A stretch of 63,895 nucleotides of DNA, counting the filler, from Pelomyxa schiedti (taxonomy: Eukaryota > Protista > Evosea): assembly GCA_020536535.1 (NCBI GenBank). It is 20 parts of 20 records of this genome, joined end to end, with 100 filler letters (N's around TTAATTAATTAA, not from the genome) between each part and the next. Parts side by side here need not be neighbours in the genome. Positions count along the whole stretch, not along the records: positions 1 to 9,726 come from JAHLWZ010000572.1; 19 more parts are not named here. One strand, 5' to 3'. A program made the position numbers and the translations under genes. The notes beneath the pieces are model-generated. The model was given only the letters and a program-made list of their open reading frames with translations. It was not told where the DNA came from and searched no databases. The stretch's first letter is position 1, and the number at the start of each line of letters is the position of its first letter. This document shows positions 1 through 9,726 of this stretch, piece by piece.

Positions 1-650
1 TATCGCACGCGCAGTTCCAGTTTCTCTGAGGATGGCTTGCAGTGACTTCTCCTTCAGTGTCAACAACAACGTCTGGGTCCGGCGATACACTGGTGTGTGT
101 TTGCTCGTGGAATGAACCAGATTTTTGAACAAAACATGTTCTGAAAACAGTTCCAACATGTTTGCGAAGTTCGTTTGCAAGTTTTTGTGCAAAGTTTGTT
201 TGGGAAGTAAAAAACCAAAAAAACCCAAAAACCCCAAGTGACGGGCGTTGGTATGTCGGTGCCACCTTCACATTTTTTTCTTATTTTATTTTTTGTAATT
301 GCCACATTGTTTGACCTCTGTGTTGTCTGTATTGCTTTGGAAACTGTTGTACAATGCCGTCCTTTCACTGTTGTCTGCACTGTTGGGTTCATCGACTCTA
401 CGATGATGGTGTCTGTGATTCTTGGCGATTGTGGTTTCACTGTTGTCACGATTGTTGCCATGACAGTAGCCAACAGTGCCTGCCATTTCCGTCGATCGTC
501 GCTGACATTGTCACCAATCGTTGCCAACATATTCTGCCTCCTTTTTTCGTGACTGTGATCCTTTTCTTTGATTATCCCACTCTTGATTGGCTTTGTTGTT
601 AGTTGCTTGTCACACTTTTGCGGACTCTGTGATAATCTATCATTGTATCC

Positions 651-2407
651 ATGTTGAGGAGAAGAAACAGTAGGACTATAAGTAAGACAAACCCTAAGGA
701 GGTTCAGATACCAGGTAATTATTTTTACTACTATGTCCGTCAAATAATGACTGTAGTCGACCCTGAACCTGTTAATCCAAGATGTTTTCACTGCACCCAC
801 CCAGTGCAAGTGGAGAAAAGAAAAATCCACAAGGTTTTTCCCTGTCTCTTCAAAAAACCTAACATATTAACAGCTACCTGGGGAACCAACTGGGAAATAA
901 ATATTCATGGTATGCAGAATGTCGTTGTAGTGGTCACTGCCGGAACCCATGTTTAGGTAATCAACACTAGTACTGAAGTGTGTAATTTTTAAGTTGCATC
1001 TAGAAAATGCACTTGTATTTGCAGTGATGAAACTAAAGAAGAATCTCACAGTGCATGGCCATGGAAGAAGTTTACCACATTGGGTCAAAAATGGCAAAAA
1101 AAACTGAATGAGGAAGATACTGAGGAAATCTTCAATGCCTCAGCTAGCAGTGACCCCAGGCAGCGAGATCTTGCAATGCATCATATGTTATTGAGGTCAG
1201 ATCTNNNNNNNNNNNNNNNNNNNNNNNNNNNNNNNNNNNNNNNNNNNNNNNNNNNNNNNNNNNNNNNNNNNNNNNNNNNNNNNNNNNNNNNNNNNNNNNN
1301 NNNNGCATCATATGTTATTGAGGTCAGATCTCCAGGATTCCCTGCGACAGCAATACCAAAGGCAACAATTTTCAGGTTGTTTTTGTTTCTTTTTCTTTAC
1401 AACTCATTACTAAACAGGAACAACAACATCACAATCGACAACAACTATGACTTCTGTGAGGAATGCAAGGCAAGGTGGATGTGACAGTGGAGGAAGAAGA
1501 AGAGACCCACAACAGGAAGAAAAGCAACAGGAAGATGACACTTCCAATGGAAACCCAGACCCAGAGTTGGACTTGCAGGACCAGGATGAGGATGACTCAG
1601 GTCTGAACCAAGGTTTATCATGCAGTAATCAACATCAAACTTATTTTCAAAAAGGTACCGATGCTCAGGAACCACCAATGAAAAAAGCCCGGGCACAGAT
1701 GCTTGATGCTTTGAAAAGTATTGTATTCTTTCACTTTTCATTATCTTCATGATGATCCACAGGCTGTTGGAGGCTGCTTCAACTTTCCGTCAGACTACAG
1801 GTGAACCAGATGGCTTTTTAAAAAGTGCTAATTCTCTAACAGGAGGAGATTTGTTCCACAGAATAGATACAAGTTTCCCCTCTCCATTATCCAAAACAGA
1901 CCTGCCCCCCTCAACACCAGGGGTAGCTATGTCAATGGAATCAGGAGTAGCAACAATCTCCAATCAGCTTCCTTTCAACCAAAACAGTGCTTCAAGTGTG
2001 CACATTAACCAAAATTTAACAAATACTTACACACCTGCCACAAATACTTCTGCACATGGAACATCTACTTTCGCACCTAAAACAATGGCACCAGCACCTG
2101 TCGCAAATACTTCCGCACCTGTAACAAACACATTCGCACCTGTTGTGAATACTTCAACACCGGGAATCCCTGTCAAATACTTCCATGCCTACAACACCTG
2201 GAAGTCATAGTGTGCACTTTTATGCCACTGCCACTGCAAGCTGCAAGTGACAAGCCAGGATAATGATGTTCCTCTCTATCTGGGTCAAGCATTTGACCCA
2301 TTTGATCCTTCTGCCCACCACCACCTCCACCAGGGCCTCCTACATACTCATTCCAAATTCCCCCTGGTTATGTGTTGGTACCTAACCCAACAACAAAAAC
2401 CACTTAA
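651..2407 (+). pseudogene. Cys-rich multi-exon transposon-associated gene, copy A (internal deletions, N gap)
   Basis: Colinear with copy C (5072-7140) but lacks segments equivalent to about 5410-5550, 6190-6325 and 6541-6643. Confidence 0.6.
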
Positions 2408-2449
2408 AAACTTTCTGTTTCCTTTAAACATTGTGCCAAAAGCACACTT

Positions 2450-2855
2450 TTCATAAGGTTGATAGACTTGTCCTGGAACAAAGTAATGACAGTGTGCTGC
2501 ATAGGCGGAAACCATTCTTCCTGTTATGTTTTCAGCTTCAGCATAAAGCCATGCCTCCAGATTGTGCTGGTTGATGAGTTTTGTGTTCTTACGGAGATTT
2601 TGCTTGATGGTACCAAAGCAGGTTTCTATCCAGGCAAAATCAGGAGAGCTGACAGGTCTGTGTAAAAATAAGAAAAAATGAAAAAATAATAAAAAGAACA
2701 GGAAGCCCACCTACGGACAAGTAGATGACCCTCACTTTCAACAAGCTCAAAGATGGACTTGTCTAAATGTGATTTGTGGTTATCCATCAGGCACACCCTG
2801 GGTCTTCCTCGAATTGCAGGAAGTAACAGTGTGGCAAGCCAACAATAAAAAACAT
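2450..2855 (-). pseudogene. 3' part of Tc1/IS630 DD34E transposase, copy A (cut by N gap)
   Basis: Encodes RVCLMDNHKSHLD...PVSSPDFAWIE and is nearly identical to 7200-7620. Confidence 0.8.
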
Positions 2856-3495
2856 NNNNNNNNNNNNNNNNNNNNNNNNNNNNNNNNNNNNNNNNNNNNN
2901 NNNNNNNNNNNNNNNNNNNNNNNNNNNNNNNNNNNNNNNNNNNNNNNNNNNNNNNACGGGGCGTGACTACCACAATGGGACGGCGACTCAACACTCTCGT
3001 GGGGCCGTTGACTTGGGGGTAGATGTGGTCACAGCATTCTCATTCTCTTGCTTTTTCGTTCCACCTGATGACTTCGGCTGGGAAGTAAAAAAACCAAAAA
3101 CCCCAAGTGCCGGGGCGTTTGTATGTCATTGCCACCTTCACATTTTTTCTGAGTCAGCTTCACGAAGTAGCTCCAGTTCCATACAAAAAACTGTACCAAG
3201 GTCAGAGAGTGGCACTGCTTTGGCCTCTCAATCCCACTCTGGTTCACGAAGTGGCTCTAGCTATAGACGTGGATCAGGCTCAAGAATTTGTGGTTTCACT
3301 GTTGCCACGATTGTTGCCACGACAGTAGCCAACAGTGCCCGCCATTTCCGTCGATCGTCGCCGACATTGTCACCAATCGTCGCCAACATATCGTGACTGT
3401 GATCCTTTGCTTTGACTATCCCGCTCTTGATTGGCTTTGTTGTTAGTTGCTTGTCACACTTTCGCGGACTCTGTGATAATCCCTCAATTGTATCC

Positions 3496-4930
3496 ATGTC
3501 GAGGAGAAGAAACGGTAGGACTATAAGTAAGACAAACCCTAAGGAGGTTCAGATACCAGGTAATTATTTTTACTACTATGTAAAAACCTTCAAATAATGA
3601 CTGTAGTCGACCCTGAACCTGTTAATCCAAGATGTTTTCACTGCACCCACCCAGTGCAAGTGGAAAAAAGAAAAATCCGCAAGGTTTTTCCCTGTCTCTT
3701 CAAAAAACCATGTTTAGGTAATCAACACCAGTACTGAAGTGTGTAATTGACAGTAATTTTTATAGGGTGTGATGACTGACTGTGGACTTGGGTTACTGTG
3801 CATGCAATCGAGACCAACAAACATGTAGTATTTGTGGCAAAGGTTTTTGCTCTAACTGCCCGTATGAACACACTTTTTCTTTTTATTTTTAAGTTGTGTC
3901 TAGAAAAATGCACTTGTATTTGCAGTGATGAAACTGAAGAAGAATCTCACAGTGCATGGCCATGGAAGAAGTTTACCACATTGAGTGTCAAAAATGGCAA
4001 AAAAAAACTGAATGAGGAAGATACTGAGGAAATCTTCAATGCCTCAGCTAGAAGTGACCCCCAGCAGTGCGATTTTGCAATGCATCATATGTTATTGAGG
4101 TCAGATCTCCAGGATTCCCTGCGACAGCAATACCAAAGGCAACAATTTTCAGGTTGTTTTTGTTTCTTTTTCTTTACAACTCATTACTAAACAGGAACAA
4201 CATCATCACAATCGACAACAACTATGACTTCTGTGAGGAATGCAAGGCAAGGTGGATGTGACAGTGGAGGAAGAAGAAGAGACCCACAAGTGGAAGAAAA
4301 GCAACAGGAAGATGACACTTCTGATGGAAACCCAGACCCAGAGTTGGAGTTGCTAGACCAGGATGAGGATGACCAAGACTCAGGTCTGAACCAAGGTTTA
4401 TCATGCAGTAATCAACATCAAACTTATTTTAAAAAAGGTACTGATGCTCAGGAACCACCAATGAAAAAAGCCCGGGCACAGATGCTTGATGCTTTGAAAA
4501 GTATTGTATTCTTTCACTTTTCATTATCTTCATGGTGTTTCAGAATTCATTCTTTACATGACACCATTATGTGAGAGTACTGATACAACCAAAGCAGTCC
4601 TTTCTTTTTTGGTTTCTGTCATGCAGGCTTATGAAGGCACAGTTTTCTATCAACAGTCTAATGACATGATGATCCACAGGCTGTTGGAGGCTGCTTCAAC
4701 TTTCCGTCAGACTACAGGTGAACTAGATGGCTTTTTAAGAAGTGCTAATTCTCTAACAGGAGGAGATTTGTTCCACAGAATAGATACAAGTTTACCTTCT
4801 CCATTATCCAAAACAGACCTGCCCCCCTCAACACCAGGGGTAGCTATGTCAATGGAATTCAGGAGTAGCAACAATCTCCAAAAGTGGACTCACAGCAACA
4901 GCACTGGGGAATAATCTAGCAGTAACCACT
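3496..4930 (+). pseudogene. Cys-rich transposon-associated gene, copy B (3'-truncated at a rearranged junction)
   Basis: Colinear with 5072-6590 and ends in the mosaic junction at 4930-5021. Confidence 0.6.
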
Positions 4931-5071
4931 TAAATCAAGTGTGCACCAGCACCTGTCGCAAATACTTCCGCACCTGTCACATCCACCTTGCCTTGCATTC
5001 CTCACAGAAGTCATAGTTGTTAGTTGCTTGTCACACTTTCGCGGACTCTGTGATAATCTATCATTGCATCC

Positions 5072-7140
5072 ATGTCGAGGAGAAGAAACAGTAGGACTAT
5101 AAGTAAGACAAACCCTAAGGAGGTTCATATACCAGGTAATTATTTTTACTACTATGCAAAAACCTTCAAATAATGACTGCAGTCGACCCTGAACCTGTTA
5201 ATCCAAGATGTTTTCACTGCACCCACCCAGTGCAAGTGGAAAAAAGAAAAATCCACAAGGTTTTTCCCTGTCTCTTCAAAAAACCTAACATATTAACAGC
5301 TCCCTGGTGAACCAACTGGGAAATATTCATGGTATGCAGAATGTCGTTGTAGTGGTCACTGCCGGAACCCATGTTTAGGTAATCAACACGAGTACTGAAG
5401 TGTGTAATTGACAGTAATTTTTATAGGGTGTGATGACTGTGTGGACTTGGGTTACTGTGCATGCAAGAAACAAAATCGAGACCAACAAACATGTAGTATT
5501 TGTGGCAAAGGTTTTTGCTCTAACTGCCCGTATGAACACACTTTTTCTTTTTATTTTTAAGTTGCATCTAGAAAATGCACTTGTATTTGCAGTGATGAAA
5601 CTAAAGAAGAATCTCACAGTGCATGGCCATGGAAGAAGTTTACCACATTGAGTCAAAAATGGCAAAAAAAACTGAATGAGGAAGATACTGAGGAAATCTT
5701 CAATGCCTCAGCTAGCAGTGACCCCAGGCAGCGAGATCTTGCAATGCATCATATGTTATTGAGGTCAGATCTCCAGGATTCCCTGTGACAGCAATACCAA
5801 AGGCAACAATTTTCAGGTTATTTTTGTTTCTTTTTCTTTACAACTCATTACTAAACAGGAACAACAACATCACAATCAACTATGACTTCTGTGAGGAATG
5901 CAAGGCAAGGTGGATGTGACAGTGGAGGAAGAAGAAGAGACCCACAACAGGAAGAAACGCAACAGGAAGATGACACTTCTGATGGAAACCCAGACCCAGA
6001 GTTGGACTTGCCAGACCAGGATGAGGATGACCAAGACTCAGGTCTGAACCAAGGTTTATCATGCAGTAATCAACATCAAACTTATTTTAAAAAAGGTACC
6101 GATGCTCGGGAACCACCAATGAAAAAAGCCCGGGCACAGATGCTTGATGCTTTGAAAAGTATTGTATTCTTCCACTTTTCATTATCTTCATGGTGTTTCA
6201 GAATTCATTCTTTACACGACACCATTATGTGAGAGTACTGATACAACCAAAGCAGTCCTTTCTTTTTTGGTTTCTGTCATGCAGGCTTATGAAGGCACAG
6301 TTTTCTATCAACAACAGTCTAATGACATGATGATCCACAGGCTGTTGGAGGCTGCTTCAACTTTCCGTCAGACTACAGGTGAACCAGATGGCTTTTTAAA
6401 AAGTGTTAATTCTCTAACAGGAGGAGATTTGTTCCACAGAATAGATACAAGTTTCCCTTCTCCATTATCCAAAACAGACCTGCCCCCCTCAACACCAGGG
6501 GTAGCTATGTCAATGGAATCAGGAGTAGCAACAATCTCCAAAAGTGGACTCACAGCAACAGCACTGGGGAATAATCTAGCAGTAACCACTGGAATCAAAG
6601 CAATAGGGAATGGGTCTTCTACAGAAGTTACTAATGGACTAACCAATCAGCTTCCTTTCAATCAAAACAGTGCTTCAAGTGTGCACATTAACCAAAATTT
6701 AACAAATACTTACACACCTGCCACAAATACTTCCGCACATGGAACATCTACTTCCACACCTAAAACAATGGCACCAGCACCTGTCACAAATACTTCCGCA
6801 TCTGTAACAAATACATTCGCACCTGTAACAAATACATTCGCACCTGTTGTGAATACTTCAACACCGGGAATCCCTGTCACAAATACTTCCATGCCTACAA
6901 CACCTGGAAGTAATATTGTGCACTTTGTTGCCACTGCCACTGCCACTGCAGCTGCGTGACAGGACAAGCCAGGATAATGATGATGTTCCTCTCTATCTGG
7001 GTCAAGCATTTGACCCATTTGATCCTTCTGTGTTTATTAATGACTGCCCACCACCACCTCCACCAGGGCCTCCTACACACTCATTCCAAATTCCCCCTGG
7101 TTATGTATTGGTACCTAACCCAACAACAAAAACCACTTAA
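5072..7140 (+). pseudogene. Cys-rich (CxC/Zn-cluster-like) protein with acidic and Thr/Pro-rich C-terminal half, copy C (most complete; frameshifted)
   Basis: Spliced reading MSRRRN...EVQIP | VDPEPVNPRCFHCTHP | YAECRCSGHCRNPCL | GCDDCGLGYCAC...CSICGKGFCSNC | KCTCIC, followed by ORF 6162-6959 and a final exon ending at 7140. GT-AG boundaries are visible. Confidence 0.6.
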
Positions 7141-7198
7141 GAACTAGAAAAACTTTCTGTTTCCTTTAAACATTGTGCCAAAAGCACACACACACTTT

Positions 7199-8351
7199 TC
7201 ATATGAAAAGTTGATAGACTTGTCCTGGAACAAAGTAATGACAGTGTGCTGCATAGGCGGAAACCATACTTCCTGTTATGTTTTCAGCTTCAGCATAAAG
7301 CCATGCAATGCCTCCAGATTGTTGGTTGATGAGTTTTGTGTTCTTACGGAGATTTTGCTTGATGGTACCAAAGCAGGTTTCTATCCAGGCAAAATCAGGA
7401 GAGCTGACAGGTCTGTGTAAAAATAAGAAAAAAATGAAAAAATAAATAAAAAGAACAAAAAGAACAGGAAGCCCACCTACGGACAAGTAGATGACCCTCC
7501 CTTTCAACAAGCTCAAAGATGGACTTGTCTAAATGTGATTTGTGGTTATCCATCAGGCACACCCTGGGTCTTCCTCGAATTGCAGGAAGTAACAGTGTGG
7601 CAAGCCAACAATAAAAAACATGCACATTGAAACTCTCTGAGAAGACAAAAGGGGCAATCACCCCAACATTGATATCTGCAGCCATGATCAAATTAAGCCT
7701 TTTGGAGGCAGATGGCTGTATGTGAGGAGTTAGGCAATCCCGGAAGTAGGAAACTGAAGATGCCTGACAATTTTGACACGGACAGACTCCCCAGGTAATG
7801 AATGTCCTTGCCTTCTGCATGTTGATTTCAAGTCACAGCCCATTTCATCCATATCGAGCATGCAATCCACTGGGACATCACATATCCTTCAGGGACTTGG
7901 TATTAGGTTATCGGGTGCAACCACCATATGATTCTAGAGCCCTAGGGAAACAACTACTATGTGAGATAGACGAAAATCAAAGAAAAAAAAAACCCTAGCA
8001 CCTCATTTTCAGAGCTGATTTTCTTTTTAGTTATATAGCACAACTTGAATCCTAGGTTTTTTTGTTGCTCATGAAATATCTGTGACACTTGATCATTGTT
8101 ACAATTAAATTATAGAAGAAGGAACAAAATTTGAATAGCATTCAAGTCTTTGCCAACAGAAATTCGATTTGTTCACCTCTAGTGGAAGACCCTTCTTTAC
8201 AAATAAATTCTTTCAACATACATAGAACCTCTGGTGACATCTTTGTTGGCCGACCTCCTCCATGTCGGGGTCTTTTCTTATATTCATATACAGTAGAAAG
8301 AGCCACCCCTTCTTCAAAGGCCACTTGTTGTGCATTCTCGTTGTGGTCCAT
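7199..8351 (-). pseudogene. Intron-containing Tc1/IS630-family DD34E transposase
   Basis: N-terminal HTH (VALSTVYEYKKRPRHGGGRPTKMS); D1 in MLDMDEMG...RRQGHSLPGE (~7847); D2 in CLMDNHKSH. After removing intron 7413-7476 the frame reads LVRRPVSSPDFAWIE, giving exactly 34 residues between D2 and E. In-frame TGA at 8069-8071 and 7889-7891. Confidence 0.9.
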
Positions 8352-9012
8352 TCACTGAGAAGACAGTGACAGGTTAAGTCGAAAAGATCTTTGCAGGTGC
8401 CGAAAGGATCGCCACAAGTATCGATATCAGTCGAAATATTGTCGCTAAAACTATCGCGAGTGCCGATAAATGCCGGAAAGATCGCGACCAATCCACCCCC
8501 ACAGTCTGGACTGAATGCCACAAGCCACAAATATACTGTTGTAAGGAATGACGAAAAAAAATGAGGAAAACATTTGTGGAGGTACTAATATGGCAAATAA
8601 CAACATGCCACAGTCACAACGAGCCACACAATACACCCCACACACAACCCGACCGATCTTCCTTTTTTTCTTTTCCCCGATCACAACTTTGTTTGTGAAA
8701 CTCGCTTGCAAAGCCATTGGTGTGCAAGCCATTTTTTTTCAAGGTGCAGTGGCACCCTCAACGCAACTCACCCAAGAATCTTCCAAAAACACATGATGAT
8801 TCACAACACCCAACAGTGAAACCAGGAAAAAAACCCCAAACTGAATGTGAAGCACAGGGGGTGTAGAAACCCCCCACAAGCTGGGAAAAAGGGTATGTCT
8901 CACAAACAGGAAGCCTGGTATTAAGGCAAAAGCCTGACTGGGTTGGCAAGCGCTTAAAAACTGTTCCCAACTCTTTGCCAAAGAAAATGAAAATACAAAA
9001 AAATTTCGTCGA

Positions 9013-9726
9013 ATGGGCAACGCGCCACCGTCGACGCCTCCTTCAGGGACGCCGCTAAAGCGGGGAGCGGGAGCAGATCCGAAGACGAAGACCACCGGCC
9101 CCGGCCCCCGGCTGAGGATCGGGGACCGCGTGTGCATGTGCTTCCCGCTGCGGCTGACTCATTACGCCCTCCTCGTGGAGTTGTTCCTGAGGGCATCGGG
9201 TTTCAAGTCCATCAACAGAGCACTTTCAGATGGCGGAGGAACCAGTATGAGGAAGAATAATAATAATAATAAAAATACTAATGCTGCTGCTGCTGCTGCG
9301 GAGTTTGACTTTGCGGTTGCTGTTGTGGACAAGGGGGAACTCAGAACATATAATTTGGCTAAATCCAAGGTGGGAGTGGGACAACTGCCGGAACGATTGG
9401 CGTCAGTTCACGTTGCTGTTGTATCTATTTCCAAGGGTTGTGACGTGGAACCAGGTACTTTGGAGTTGCTGCTTCAGCCGGTTACAAGTGTGGATACACT
9501 CACGAGCATGATTATTGCAAAACTTGTGATTCCCATCGCATTCCAGGAGTTGGCTAACGTTATACAAGGCGGGTGGTCGTCGCCTTATGTGGCTGGTGTT
9601 CTGGATCGATGCGACGGTGCCTGGCCCACGCCAAGTGGAAAAGATTTCAATGGGATGGCAGCGCTATTTATGTTTGTTTTTTCTGAAGCAATCAAAGCGA
9701 TTCCTGGGGGGAAATTTGTGCACTAC
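9013..9726 (+). CDS. Hypothetical protein, 3'-partial; MGN start suggests possible N-myristoylation
   Basis: Uninterrupted ORF from an ATG after an A-rich leader to the contig end. Confidence 0.6.

Follow-up and report, generated by a model that had tools for sequence, protein, structure and literature searches.

The window, the 63,895-nt stretch of joined contig parts analysed here from the 52-Mb assembly of Pelomyxa schiedti, most probably holds two dead copies of a two-gene IS630/Tc1-like transposon of about 4.3 kb that inserts at TA (probability roughly 0.75). A Cys-rich gene on the plus strand and a DD34E, DDE_3/IS630-like transposase gene on the minus strand, both multi-exon, lie tail to tail, and the complete unit carries this convergent, intron-bearing pair. 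The reading of a two-component element, proposed in a first-pass annotation of the same DNA, is supported by recurrence of the pair in four diverged lineages and by termini that lie outside both genes.

Organization of the two elements

The repeats that had been described as a tandem stack are present, but they form two elements (element 1, 86-2855; element 2, 3075-8713), the stacking being in part an internal duplication of element 2 and in part a scaffold join. The features are as follows.

86-103, plus strand: TA (86-87) and left terminal inverted repeat (TIR) of element 1, CACTGGTGTGTGTTTG
104-650, plus strand: Cys-gene-side subterminal region and 5' leader of element 1, conserved in family copies
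651-2407, plus strand: Cys-rich partner gene copy A, defective, stop TAA at 2405-2407; NCBI model Pelo_7186 spans its downstream exons
1205-1304, no strand: spurious assembly gap; flanks overlap by 27 identical nt and the exon is in frame across it
2455-2855, minus strand: transposase copy A, 3' part with the second catalytic D and the E, cut by a gap; NCBI model Pelo_7187
2856-2955, no strand: assembly gap, a real discontinuity (scaffold join) with flanks unrelated to each other
3075-4989, plus strand: first part of element 2 with Cys gene copy B, left end truncated; NCBI model Pelo_7188
4965-5021, minus strand: inverted 57-nt fragment at the B/C junction, reverse complement of 5872-5931
5072-7140, plus strand: copy C of the Cys-rich partner gene, the most complete one, ATG at 5072, TAA at 7138-7140
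5072-5135, 5183-5259, 5300-5378, 5427-5529, 5572-5816, 5859-6053, 6096-6158 and 6202 onward, plus strand: predicted exons of Cys gene copy C
5183-5640, plus strand: Cys-rich, putative multi-zinc module in four exons, all Cys invariant in three lineages
6202-6380, plus strand: second conserved partner module of about 60 aa, EF..T.L..C....T.A...F...VLQAYE.GT.F, from alignment
7141-7198, no strand: 58-nt spacer between the convergent stops of copy C, shorter in other copies
7199-8351, minus strand: transposase copy C, a multi-exon pseudogene with the DDE_3 catalytic exon
8351-8131, 8087-8002, 7941-7922 (damaged), 7886-7769, 7715-7477 and 7412-7199, minus strand: predicted exons of transposase copy C
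8352-8713, minus strand: transposase-side leader and subterminal region, truncated so that the last 91 nt, with the right TIR, are missing
8714-8957, plus strand: a different repeat outside the element, abutting the truncated end of element 2, with a TIR-like start, CCATTGGTGTGCAAG

Element 1 ends on its right side at the N gap 2856-2955, a genuine assembly break: the left flank lies in mid-transposase, at the equivalent of 7621; the sequence on the right (2956-3076) has no relation to it and recurs on contig C289 outside a left terminus. At the gap 1205-1304, the 27-nt overlap matches 5746-5772 of copy C. Element 2 contains an internal partial duplication, in which copy B of the Cys-rich gene is followed by copy C, the two being connected via the inverted 57-nt piece; this piece is a trace of either a rearrangement or a phi29 amplification chimera. 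The assembly was built from phi29-amplified single-cell DNA (PMC8887013), and some of its rearrangements may therefore be chimeras. The repeat at 8714-8957 matches contigs C310 and C1467, and its final 47 nt match many contigs.

Both window copies are immobile, pseudogenised fossils rather than working elements, with termini lost and genes broken. In element 2 neither terminus survives, and stops, frameshifts and deletions disrupt the two genes. Its left end has no equivalent of 88-200, TIR included, and on the right its homology with C757, C1776, C4024 and C711 stops at 8713.

The transposase gene

The catalytic triad comprises the D of LDMDEMG, the D of MDNHKSH and the E of AWIE (codons 7847-7849, 7548-7550 and 7379-7381 in copy C), and all three residues are invariant in a 10-sequence alignment. 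Counted across the exon junction, 34 residues separate the MDNHKSH D from the AWIE E, and NCBI's gene model (Pelo_7187; P0001) gives the same reading, in agreement with the spliced DD34E transposase first reported. Copy C has accumulated a 42-nt N-terminal deletion, a TGA at 8142-8144 and a donor change of GT to AT near 8130, a CGA-to-TGA change plus a +1 frameshift in exon 2, a 55-nt deletion that removes the end and donor of exon 3, and C-terminal indels.

Against DDE_3, the window's catalytic exon scored 28.3 bits (E 1.9e-6; cut-off 28.6), the spliced relatives P0003, P0004 and P0005 scored 49-60 bits, and C1578 scored 45.8 bits in a genome scan. The IS630 profile NF033545 matched the transposase family over nearly its full length (58-97 bits, E 9e-16 to 2e-27), under the curated cut-off of 100 bits for this NCBIfam equivalog, so that by score the family is IS630-like and outside NF033545 membership. 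Mos1 (E 2e-5) and SB (E 3e-3) profiles also matched. As a refinement of the Tc1/IS630-like label, profile scores put the transposase closer to bacterial IS630 than to Tc1 or mariner proper. Matches to helix-turn-helix (HTH) profiles at the N-terminus were sub-threshold (HTH_7, HTH_23, HTH_32 and HTH_33, E 2e-4 to 0.03). A conserved C-terminal motif, CHYxVPG..Y.PY, sets the family apart as a separate clade, whose other members derive from metagenomes and MMETSP transcripts.

The Cys-rich partner and the convergent junction

For copy C of the partner gene, exons were translated one by one and their phases checked by arithmetic; the predicted introns are 40-48 nt and GT-AG, and the downstream junctions match NCBI models. 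The encoded protein of approximately 650 aa carries 18 invariant Cys in its N-terminal module. It also has an acidic stretch leading into a basic patch of KKAR/KRPR type, the second module of about 60 aa, and a T/N/P-rich tail of low complexity. Exon by exon, the Cys patterns are CFHC, CRCSGHCRNPC, CDDCVDLGYCAC, CSICGKGFCSNC and CTCIC; the cluster noted initially stands except for one spacing, CDDCVDLGYCAC reading C-x2-C-x6-C-x-C. Within 5183-5640 the order is CFHC, CRCSGHCRNPC, C-x2-C-x6-C-x-C-x9-C-x2-C-x4-C-x2-C and CTCIC...SH..W.W, and the second module adjoins the Cys exons on C753 (twice), C1578, C893 and C833.

Searches of Pfam, PDB and the ESM Atlas returned no significant match to the Cys-rich module or the partner, nor did the second module match Pfam, and Pfam searches of the partner detected no Myb/SANT, kinase or recombinase domain. 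Exon 5427-5529 gave weak matches only to zinc-finger profiles (Trim66 B-box, E 0.044; IBR, 0.33; zf-B_box, 2.1), its best PDB profile when searched as a single exon had E 0.15, and its AlphaFold model had a pLDDT of 58. The invariant Cys/His pattern suggests that the partner may bind zinc.

All three window copies are damaged. In copy A the exon equivalent to 5427-5529 is absent, 4 nt are inserted into the CRCSGHC exon, and frameshifts occur in the 3' part; copy B retains only a minor part of the CRCSGHC exon and is cut short at the 3' end; and copy C is interrupted by an in-frame TGA at 5786-5788, where copies A and B read CGA, and shifts frame near 6957. The first-pass annotation had recognized the gene pair in two copies with a third, partial copy between them, and both observations were confirmed: the stops at 2405-2407 and 7138-7140 face transposase sequence at 2455 and 7199, respectively, and the partial copy is Cys gene copy B (~3487-4989). 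The separation of about 60 nt held for copy C, but the transposase stop there is a secondary lesion. The frame continues in copy A and in C1776 (QPYEKCAFGTMFKGNRKFF), reaching in C1776 to within a few nt of the stop of the Cys gene, so that the actual spacing lies in the range from a few to ~60 nt.

Termini and target site

In the window's family, the terminus on the Cys-gene side reads TA|CACTGGTGTGCGTTTG and that on the transposase side is its inverted counterpart, CAAAAGCACACCAGTG|TA, the 16-nt TIRs being alike at 15/16 positions. The left terminus was found in five different flanks (the window, C2691, C289, C1735 and C1035) and the full right end, ...CAAAAGCACACCAGTG|TA, in four (C711, C4024, C1119 and C1735); TA adjoined 9/9 termini examined, all with different flanks. 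A 183-bp MITE-like deletion derivative on C1735 keeps exactly both ends with TA on each side, its flanks being themselves element-derived. It is deleted exactly between a TTTGCRAAGTTCG-type motif, repeats of which occur at ~158-200 in the subterminal region of element 1, and its twin at the opposite end. While no complete filled-versus-empty site pair was found, C158 has a paralogous, uninterrupted site that retains the TA; homology extends as far as this TA, and the sequences diverge beyond it.

Whether the TIRs might exclude the Cys-rich gene was a question raised at the outset. The TA-flanked termini of the window's family lie outside both genes, and on C753 the two genes lie between TIR arms that match over at least 146 nt at 99.3% identity, with the two start codons (ATGCCACG) just inside the arms. 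Short TIRs (CACTGGTGTGCKTTTG) bound the window's family; those of C753 are long.

Recurrence, selection and alternative explanations

Nor is the pairing restricted to this locus. Further instances lie on at least six other contigs; the tail-to-tail arrangement is seen twice on C572 and also on C833, C3255, C1776, C5157 and C757, with identities of 82-97%. Each of the two genes is multi-copy, and they also co-occur on C753 (two copies), C1578 and C449, where the transposase and the Cys exons are convergent and 1.5-1.8 kb apart; with co-occurrence on so many contigs, the pairing is not due to chance. Four diverged lineages in the genome retain the convergent pair, sharing about 60-70% protein identity. 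Between lineages pS is saturated (0.63-0.97), whereas pN is 0.21-0.24 in the transposase, rising to 0.37-0.47 in the Cys exons and 0.42-0.53 in the second module. As the motifs and every Cys are kept despite this saturation, comparison of the coding sequences indicates that the partner is under selection between lineages. Substitutions within the window's family showed no codon-position bias, which was weighed against the two-gene reading, and no intact, demonstrably active copy was seen, all inspected family copies bearing deletions or mutations and the C753 copy being interrupted by an in-frame stop in exon 1. The transposase lineages on C511, C633, C601, C714 and C968 have no detectable Cys partner and distant relatives on metagenome contigs appear single-gene; therefore, the partner is not universal in the clade.

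Such partnerless transposases, together with Cys-gene loci that have no detectable transposase (C893 with all three modules, C720 and C242) and the transposase's own putative HTH region, would suit an alternative in which an ancestral IS630-like element took up a host Cys-rich gene as a passenger with no role in transposition, to the benefit of the host or of nobody. We regard this as unlikely, since a useless gene would be expected to decay, yet orientation, exon order, all Cys and the second module have been kept despite synonymous saturation, and on C753 the partner's start codon is placed against its TIR arm just as that of the transposase is. Far less probable is a host gene cluster or segmental duplication with an adjacent transposase insertion, the pair itself not being a mobile unit: the direct repeats in the window could alone be local duplication, but this reading is already contradicted by the dispersal of the pair over many contigs with unrelated flanks, by TA-flanked inverted termini outside both genes, by the enclosure of both genes within the C753 TIRs and by the MITE-like derivative that retains both ends. 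Least probable of all are phi29 or scaffolding chimeras that created the adjacency, for although the genome comes from whole-genome-amplified single cells and an inverted junction piece, a spurious gap and a false join all occur in the window, the same tail-to-tail junction occurs in independent copies differing by 3-18% and in diverged lineages, and chimeras are not expected to recur in diverged form.

Comparison with known elements

ITm elements such as IS630, Tc1, Mos1 and Sleeping Beauty are 1.3-2.4 kb in length and normally carry the transposase as their sole gene. The Pelomyxa unit shares with the IS630-Tc1-mariner group a DDE_3-type catalytic domain, DD34E, a TA target and TIRs starting with CA, with sub-threshold matches to the N-terminal paired HTH region of that group, but differs in its greater length (~4.3 kb), in the many 40-90-nt introns that split both genes, and in a second conserved gene inside the TIRs in four lineages.

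To our knowledge, multi-ORF relatives of ITm elements are known only in ciliates. The elements concerned (Oxytricha TBE, Euplotes Tec, Paramecium Sardine/Anchois and relatives) contain extra ORFs inside their TIRs, among them a zinc-finger protein in TBE and an ORF2 of unknown function common to all Paramecium elements (PMC7325037, PMC5405496, PMC4724952). They resemble the Pelomyxa unit in combining an ITm DD34E-type transposase with an extra ORF, the partner being compared with ciliate ORFs by description only. In contrast, the Pelomyxa host belongs to Amoebozoa, a different supergroup, and its unit has two genes rather than three or more. Its termini (CACTGGTGTG...) are not telomeric, unlike the C4A4 ends of TBE/Tec, and Pfam detected no kinase or recombinase domain in the element to parallel the TBE/Tec zinc-finger/kinase protein or tyrosine recombinase.

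PIF/Harbinger elements have a PIF-type DDE transposase, a Myb/SANT-like DNA-binding partner and a 3-bp target site duplication (TSD). They offer a working analogy as cut-and-paste elements with a second gene, here a putative nucleic-acid- or chromatin-binding partner, but the Pelomyxa transposase is of DDE_3 and not PIF type, has a putative HTH region of its own, targets TA rather than generating a 3-bp TSD, and has a partner without Myb/SANT.

Proposed mechanism

In the two-gene transposon that we favour, the transposase gene is read inward from one end and that of the Cys-rich partner inward from the other, each element end presumably serving as the promoter for one gene. The two transcripts would terminate some tens of nt apart at most, perhaps with an overlap, and the transposase would excise and integrate the whole unit. 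The partner could be a nuclear, zinc-binding accessory factor required for propagation of the element; modelled on the Myb-like partner of PIF/Harbinger, this role is plausible at somewhat less than even odds. Its likeliest action would be to bind subterminal repeats or chromatin, or to bind and regulate the transposase, with self-regulation or the anti-silencing raised in the first-pass annotation as alternative roles; since the transposase has its own putative N-terminal HTH, it might not require a partner to bind DNA.

More tentatively still, this amoebozoan IS630-like branch may represent a true two-component system, in which transposition depends on a multi-zinc protein not seen before, of new fold and without database relatives, whose gene converges on that of the transposase and is expressed from the opposite TIR. 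If so, it would be the first two-component ITm system outside ciliates, and its partner would define a new class of transposon accessory factor.

Organization of the window copies

A transposase gene of the IS630-Tc1-mariner (ITm) superfamily and a convergent Cys-rich gene, here called the partner, recur together in the window, in agreement with the first-pass annotation, which had proposed that they form a two-gene transposon. We assign this reading a probability of roughly three in four, supported by the dispersal of the pair, by termini flanked by TA and by an inverted repeat enclosing both genes on contig C753. The copies analysed lie on contig C572 (NCBI gene models Pelo_7186, Pelo_7187 and Pelo_7188) of the 52.4-Mb, 5337-contig Pelomyxa schiedti assembly. 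Transposons are unmentioned in the genome paper, which reports 7.4 introns per gene and phi29-amplified DNA from seven single cells as the source material (PMC8887013). This background accounts for the multi-exon transposon genes and calls for caution over inverted chimeric joins.

Features of contig C572 (window coordinates)
86-2855: element 1, cut by the gap at 2856-2955
651-2407, plus strand: Cys-rich gene copy A, without the equivalent of exon 5427-5529; the preceding exon has a 4-nt insertion
1205-1304: N gap, spurious; its two 27-nt flanks are identical (= 5746-5772 of copy C)
2855->2455, minus strand: transposase 3' fragment
2856-2955: N gap, real break; left flank mid-transposase (= 7621), right flank unrelated
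3075-8713: element 2, with an internal duplication, copy B then copy C
~3487-4989, plus strand: Cys-rich gene copy B, with most of the exon 5300-5378 equivalent missing and the 3' end truncated
4965-5021: inverted 57-nt piece joining copies B and C within element 2
5072-7140, plus strand: Cys-rich gene copy C, the fullest of the three copies
5072-5135, 5183-5259, 5300-5378, 5427-5529, 5572-5816, 5859-6053, 6096-6158, 6202 onward, plus strand: modelled exons of copy C
8351->7199, minus strand: transposase copy C, a pseudogene
8351-8131, 8087-8002, 7941-7922, 7886-7769, 7715-7477, 7412-7199, minus strand: transposase exons

The pair had also been described as stacked in tandem, and while the repetition stands, the arrangement is one of two elements, the first cut by a gap and the second carrying the internal B/C duplication. 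Given the 27-nt identity across the gap at 1205-1304, the exon runs on without a break and keeps its frame. Sequence to the right of the second gap (2956-3076) is 100% identical to a stretch of C289 that lies beyond a left terminus, at a distance of 86 nt, and no transposase follows it there. In element 2 neither terminus remains, the left end being deleted relative to C289 and the right end adjoining another repeat.

All three copies of the Cys-rich gene are on the plus strand. Exon phases in copy C were checked arithmetically, with every exon translated separately, and its later exon junctions match the NCBI models; the partner models Pelo_7186 and Pelo_7188 begin downstream of the Cys-rich exons. 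The seven modelled introns (5136-6201) are GT-AG and strikingly uniform in length, at 40-48 nt. Copy C carries an in-frame TGA at 5786-5788, where copies A and B have CGA, and a frameshift near 6957.

Decay and neighbouring sequence

The window copies of the transposon are fossils. Observed/expected CpG is 0.32-0.35 in these copies (88-8713), compared with 0.89 in the adjacent host ORF (9013-9726) and intermediate values of 0.49-0.50 in the C753 and C1578 elements, and the observed/expected ratios of TpG and CpA in the window copies are 1.35-1.54. Several of the inactivating stops are CGA>TGA changes; this and the CpG loss are the hallmark of C>T decay, methylation-linked or similar, that targets repeats. 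The adjacent ORF, which is presumably a host gene, is intron-free, encodes at least 238 aa before running off the piece, begins MGNAPP, contains an Asn/Ala-rich run, has 52% GC and had no match in Pfam.

Between this ORF and the truncated right end of element 2 lies a different repeat (8714-8957), which starts with CCATTGGTGTGCAAG, similar to a TIR, and has matches on C310 and C1467. The final 47 nt of the repeat (8910-8956) occur on ~20 contigs, often 75-121 nt from the contig start.

Dispersal and termini of the two-gene unit

The first-pass annotation had named a pairing confined to this locus as a refuting case; the pair recurs elsewhere. Both genes are dispersed repeats, and the same tail-to-tail junction was found on C833, C3255, C1776 and C5157 at 82-97% identity, as well as on C757 with a deletion. 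On the Cys-gene side, homology between copies ends at window position 86, and in five copies with unrelated flanks the left terminus reads CACTGGTGTGCGTTTGCTCGTGG directly after a TA. On the transposase side, homology of the window copy ends at 8713, with the true end 91 nt further; this right terminus reads CAAAAGCACACCAGTG immediately before a TA on C711, C4024, C1119 and C1735, in four different flanks. Together these termini make up a TIR of 16 nt with 15/16 positions matching, and in the window's family TA-abutting inverted termini lie outside both genes, where the first-pass annotation had suggested looking for them. A search within the window (86-330 against 8340-8800) found no TIR, because the right end there is truncated. 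We estimate the full element at ~4.3 kb.

On C1735, a 183-bp derivative consists of just the two element ends with TA on each side, and its deletion point is at a TTTGCRAAGTTCG motif that occurs near both ends of the element. A paralogue of the window's left flank on C158 is homologous through the TA and then differs, as an uninterrupted target would. C912, a candidate for the ancestral host copy of the Cys-rich gene, was rejected, as it is a truncated, rearranged element fragment.

Several further junctions were observed. The left terminus on C2691 (locus piece L036, 443-446) and the right terminus on C1735 (L078, 1500-1502) adjoin one same TA, equivalent to window 249-250, in an inverted element copy, which suggests either that the element inserted into itself at a favoured site or that a single old nested insertion is represented on two contigs. 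A related family with terminus CACCGGTGTGCAAATG was found on C757 (L003, ~1044-1083), inserted at a TA within the right end of a window-family element, and on C912 (L020, 405-444), upstream of the fragment; these elements therefore nest in one another.

Affiliation of the transposase

Alignment with five other family copies identifies the window transposase as a pseudogene: 42 nt are deleted N-terminally, a TGA stands at 8142-8144, one splice donor is lost, exon 2 has both a CGA>TGA change and a +1 frameshift, a deletion of 55 nt took away the end and donor of exon 3, and C-terminal indels create the early stop at 7199. Its catalytic exon matched Pfam DDE_3 (E 1.9e-6), to which spliced NCBI models of family members scored 49-60 bits; these models also aligned to NCBIfam IS630 along almost their entire length (E 1e-20 to 2e-27, below the equivalog cut-off). 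PDB matches of the family profile were Mos1 (E 2e-5), SETMAR and Sleeping Beauty, and the D-to-E spacing is 34 residues.

A word-based protein search with the transposase exon matched only C572's own model, and among 1.84 billion proteins searched exhaustively with a profile, four Pelomyxa schiedti clusters scored E 1e-26 or better. The next-best relatives (E 1e-13 and weaker) were proteins of 311-360 aa, from metagenomes and one MMETSP transcript. A C-terminal CHYxVPG..Y.PY motif is common to all of these proteins, those of Pelomyxa schiedti included. No Cys-rich neighbour was present on the short contigs bearing the distant, non-Pelomyxa relatives. The closest of them (262 aa, E 1e-13), on the 2033-nt JGI 3300030609 contig L093, also has a convergent ORF, of 226 aa, 34 nt downstream; this ORF has none of the partner's Cys motifs and no Pfam match. 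A 536-aa Pelomyxa schiedti model named 'Ubiquitin-conjugating enzyme E2 J1' (P0127, KAH3760098.1) falls in one cluster, at 90% identity, with the transposase model Pelo_9106; it is probably a fused gene model, part host gene and part inserted element.

Diverged lineages and selection on the partner

Two relatives of the transposase, on C1578 and C753, stand at ~65% DNA identity to it, and at 64-70% identity over the catalytic exon. On C1578 (entire contig 4.6 kb), the plus-strand transposase (116-1328) converges on a minus-strand gene that has the same Cys exons, and a terminus-like CACTGGTGTGTGTGCAC lies ~970 nt upstream of the Cys-gene ATG. On C753, both genes are bracketed by a 146-nt inverted repeat of 99.3% identity, which begins with CACCCGTG directly after a TA and whose outer arm has lost 3 nt to the contig end; weaker arm homology runs on to both start codons, each ATGCCACG. 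The possibility raised earlier, that the TIRs exclude the Cys-rich gene, is contradicted by this arrangement.

Whole-genome profile searches placed the transposase and Cys exons in convergent orientation, separated by 1.5-1.8 kb, on C572, C753 (two copies), C1578 and C449, and no Cys partner was detected for transposase lineages C511, C633, C601, C714 and C968. Partner Cys exons in the right order, with no detectable transposase, were also seen on C893 (20605-21422), which additionally carries the partner's second module, and on C720 (66802-67058); these could be solo copies, domesticated copies or non-autonomous elements.

Substitutions within the window's family are even over codon positions, as expected of dead copies, and this lack of bias therefore carries no information on selection. 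Between the three lineages, synonymous sites are saturated (pS 0.63-0.97), and pN is 0.21-0.24 in the transposase exon, 0.37-0.47 in the Cys exons and 0.42-0.53 in the second module, figures biased toward conservation since the segments were selected for alignability. Every Cys is invariant, as are one His and several further residues. Even allowing for this bias, such conserved segments would not survive in a decaying passenger.

Architecture of the partner protein

Read exon by exon, the N-terminus of the partner runs CFHC, CRCSGHCRNPC, an 8-Cys exon (C-x2-C-x6-C-x-C-x9-C-x2-C-x4-C-x2-C) and CTCIC, then SH..W.W. Next come a stretch of acidic residues, a patch of basic ones (PPMKKAR in the window, SKRPR in C753), a conserved ~60-aa module and a long T/N/P-rich tail with a proline run at its end. 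Structure and profile searches, proposed at the outset for the Cys-rich protein, used single exons or exon alignments as queries and yielded no significant match. There was no significant match in Pfam for ten Cys-module exon ORFs from three lineages, in PDB profile searches with Cys-module exon alignments or in an ESM Atlas feature search with two Cys-module exons, and none in Pfam for the second conserved module. The sole recurring match of the 8-Cys exon, weak and below significance, was to B-box/IBR, and AlphaFold prediction of exon 4 alone from a 3-row alignment (pLDDT 58) was too poor for use.

Judging by its architecture and by analogy with PIF/Harbinger, the partner may bind zinc, may be nuclear and may act on DNA, chromatin or the transposase. 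A role as an accessory factor would be the best available explanation, held tentatively at somewhat under even odds.

Significance for ITm elements and Pelomyxa

In textbooks, ITm elements exemplify the transposon with a single gene between two TIRs, and gene-transfer tools in wide use are built on them. To our knowledge, conserved accessory genes in these elements are known only from ciliates. The multi-ORF ITm elements described there (PMC7325037, PMC5405496, PMC4724952) include TBE, with a zinc-finger ORF, Tec, with a recombinase, and the Paramecium elements, in which an ORF2 of unknown function is common to all thirteen. The Pelomyxa family follows the same principle but differs in termini, gene number and host group. 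A superfamily-wide survey recorded just two Tc1/mariner elements in Amoebozoa (PMC7325037); a diverse DNA-transposon family is now documented in Archamoebae, and about a dozen 'hypothetical protein' models in the Pelomyxa schiedti annotation are flagged as transposon fragments. As a second two-gene ITm lineage of independent origin, the family would be a convenient system in which to find out which tasks lie beyond an ITm transposase acting by itself, since its Cys module is small and strongly patterned and its proposed TIR-promoter architecture is symmetric.
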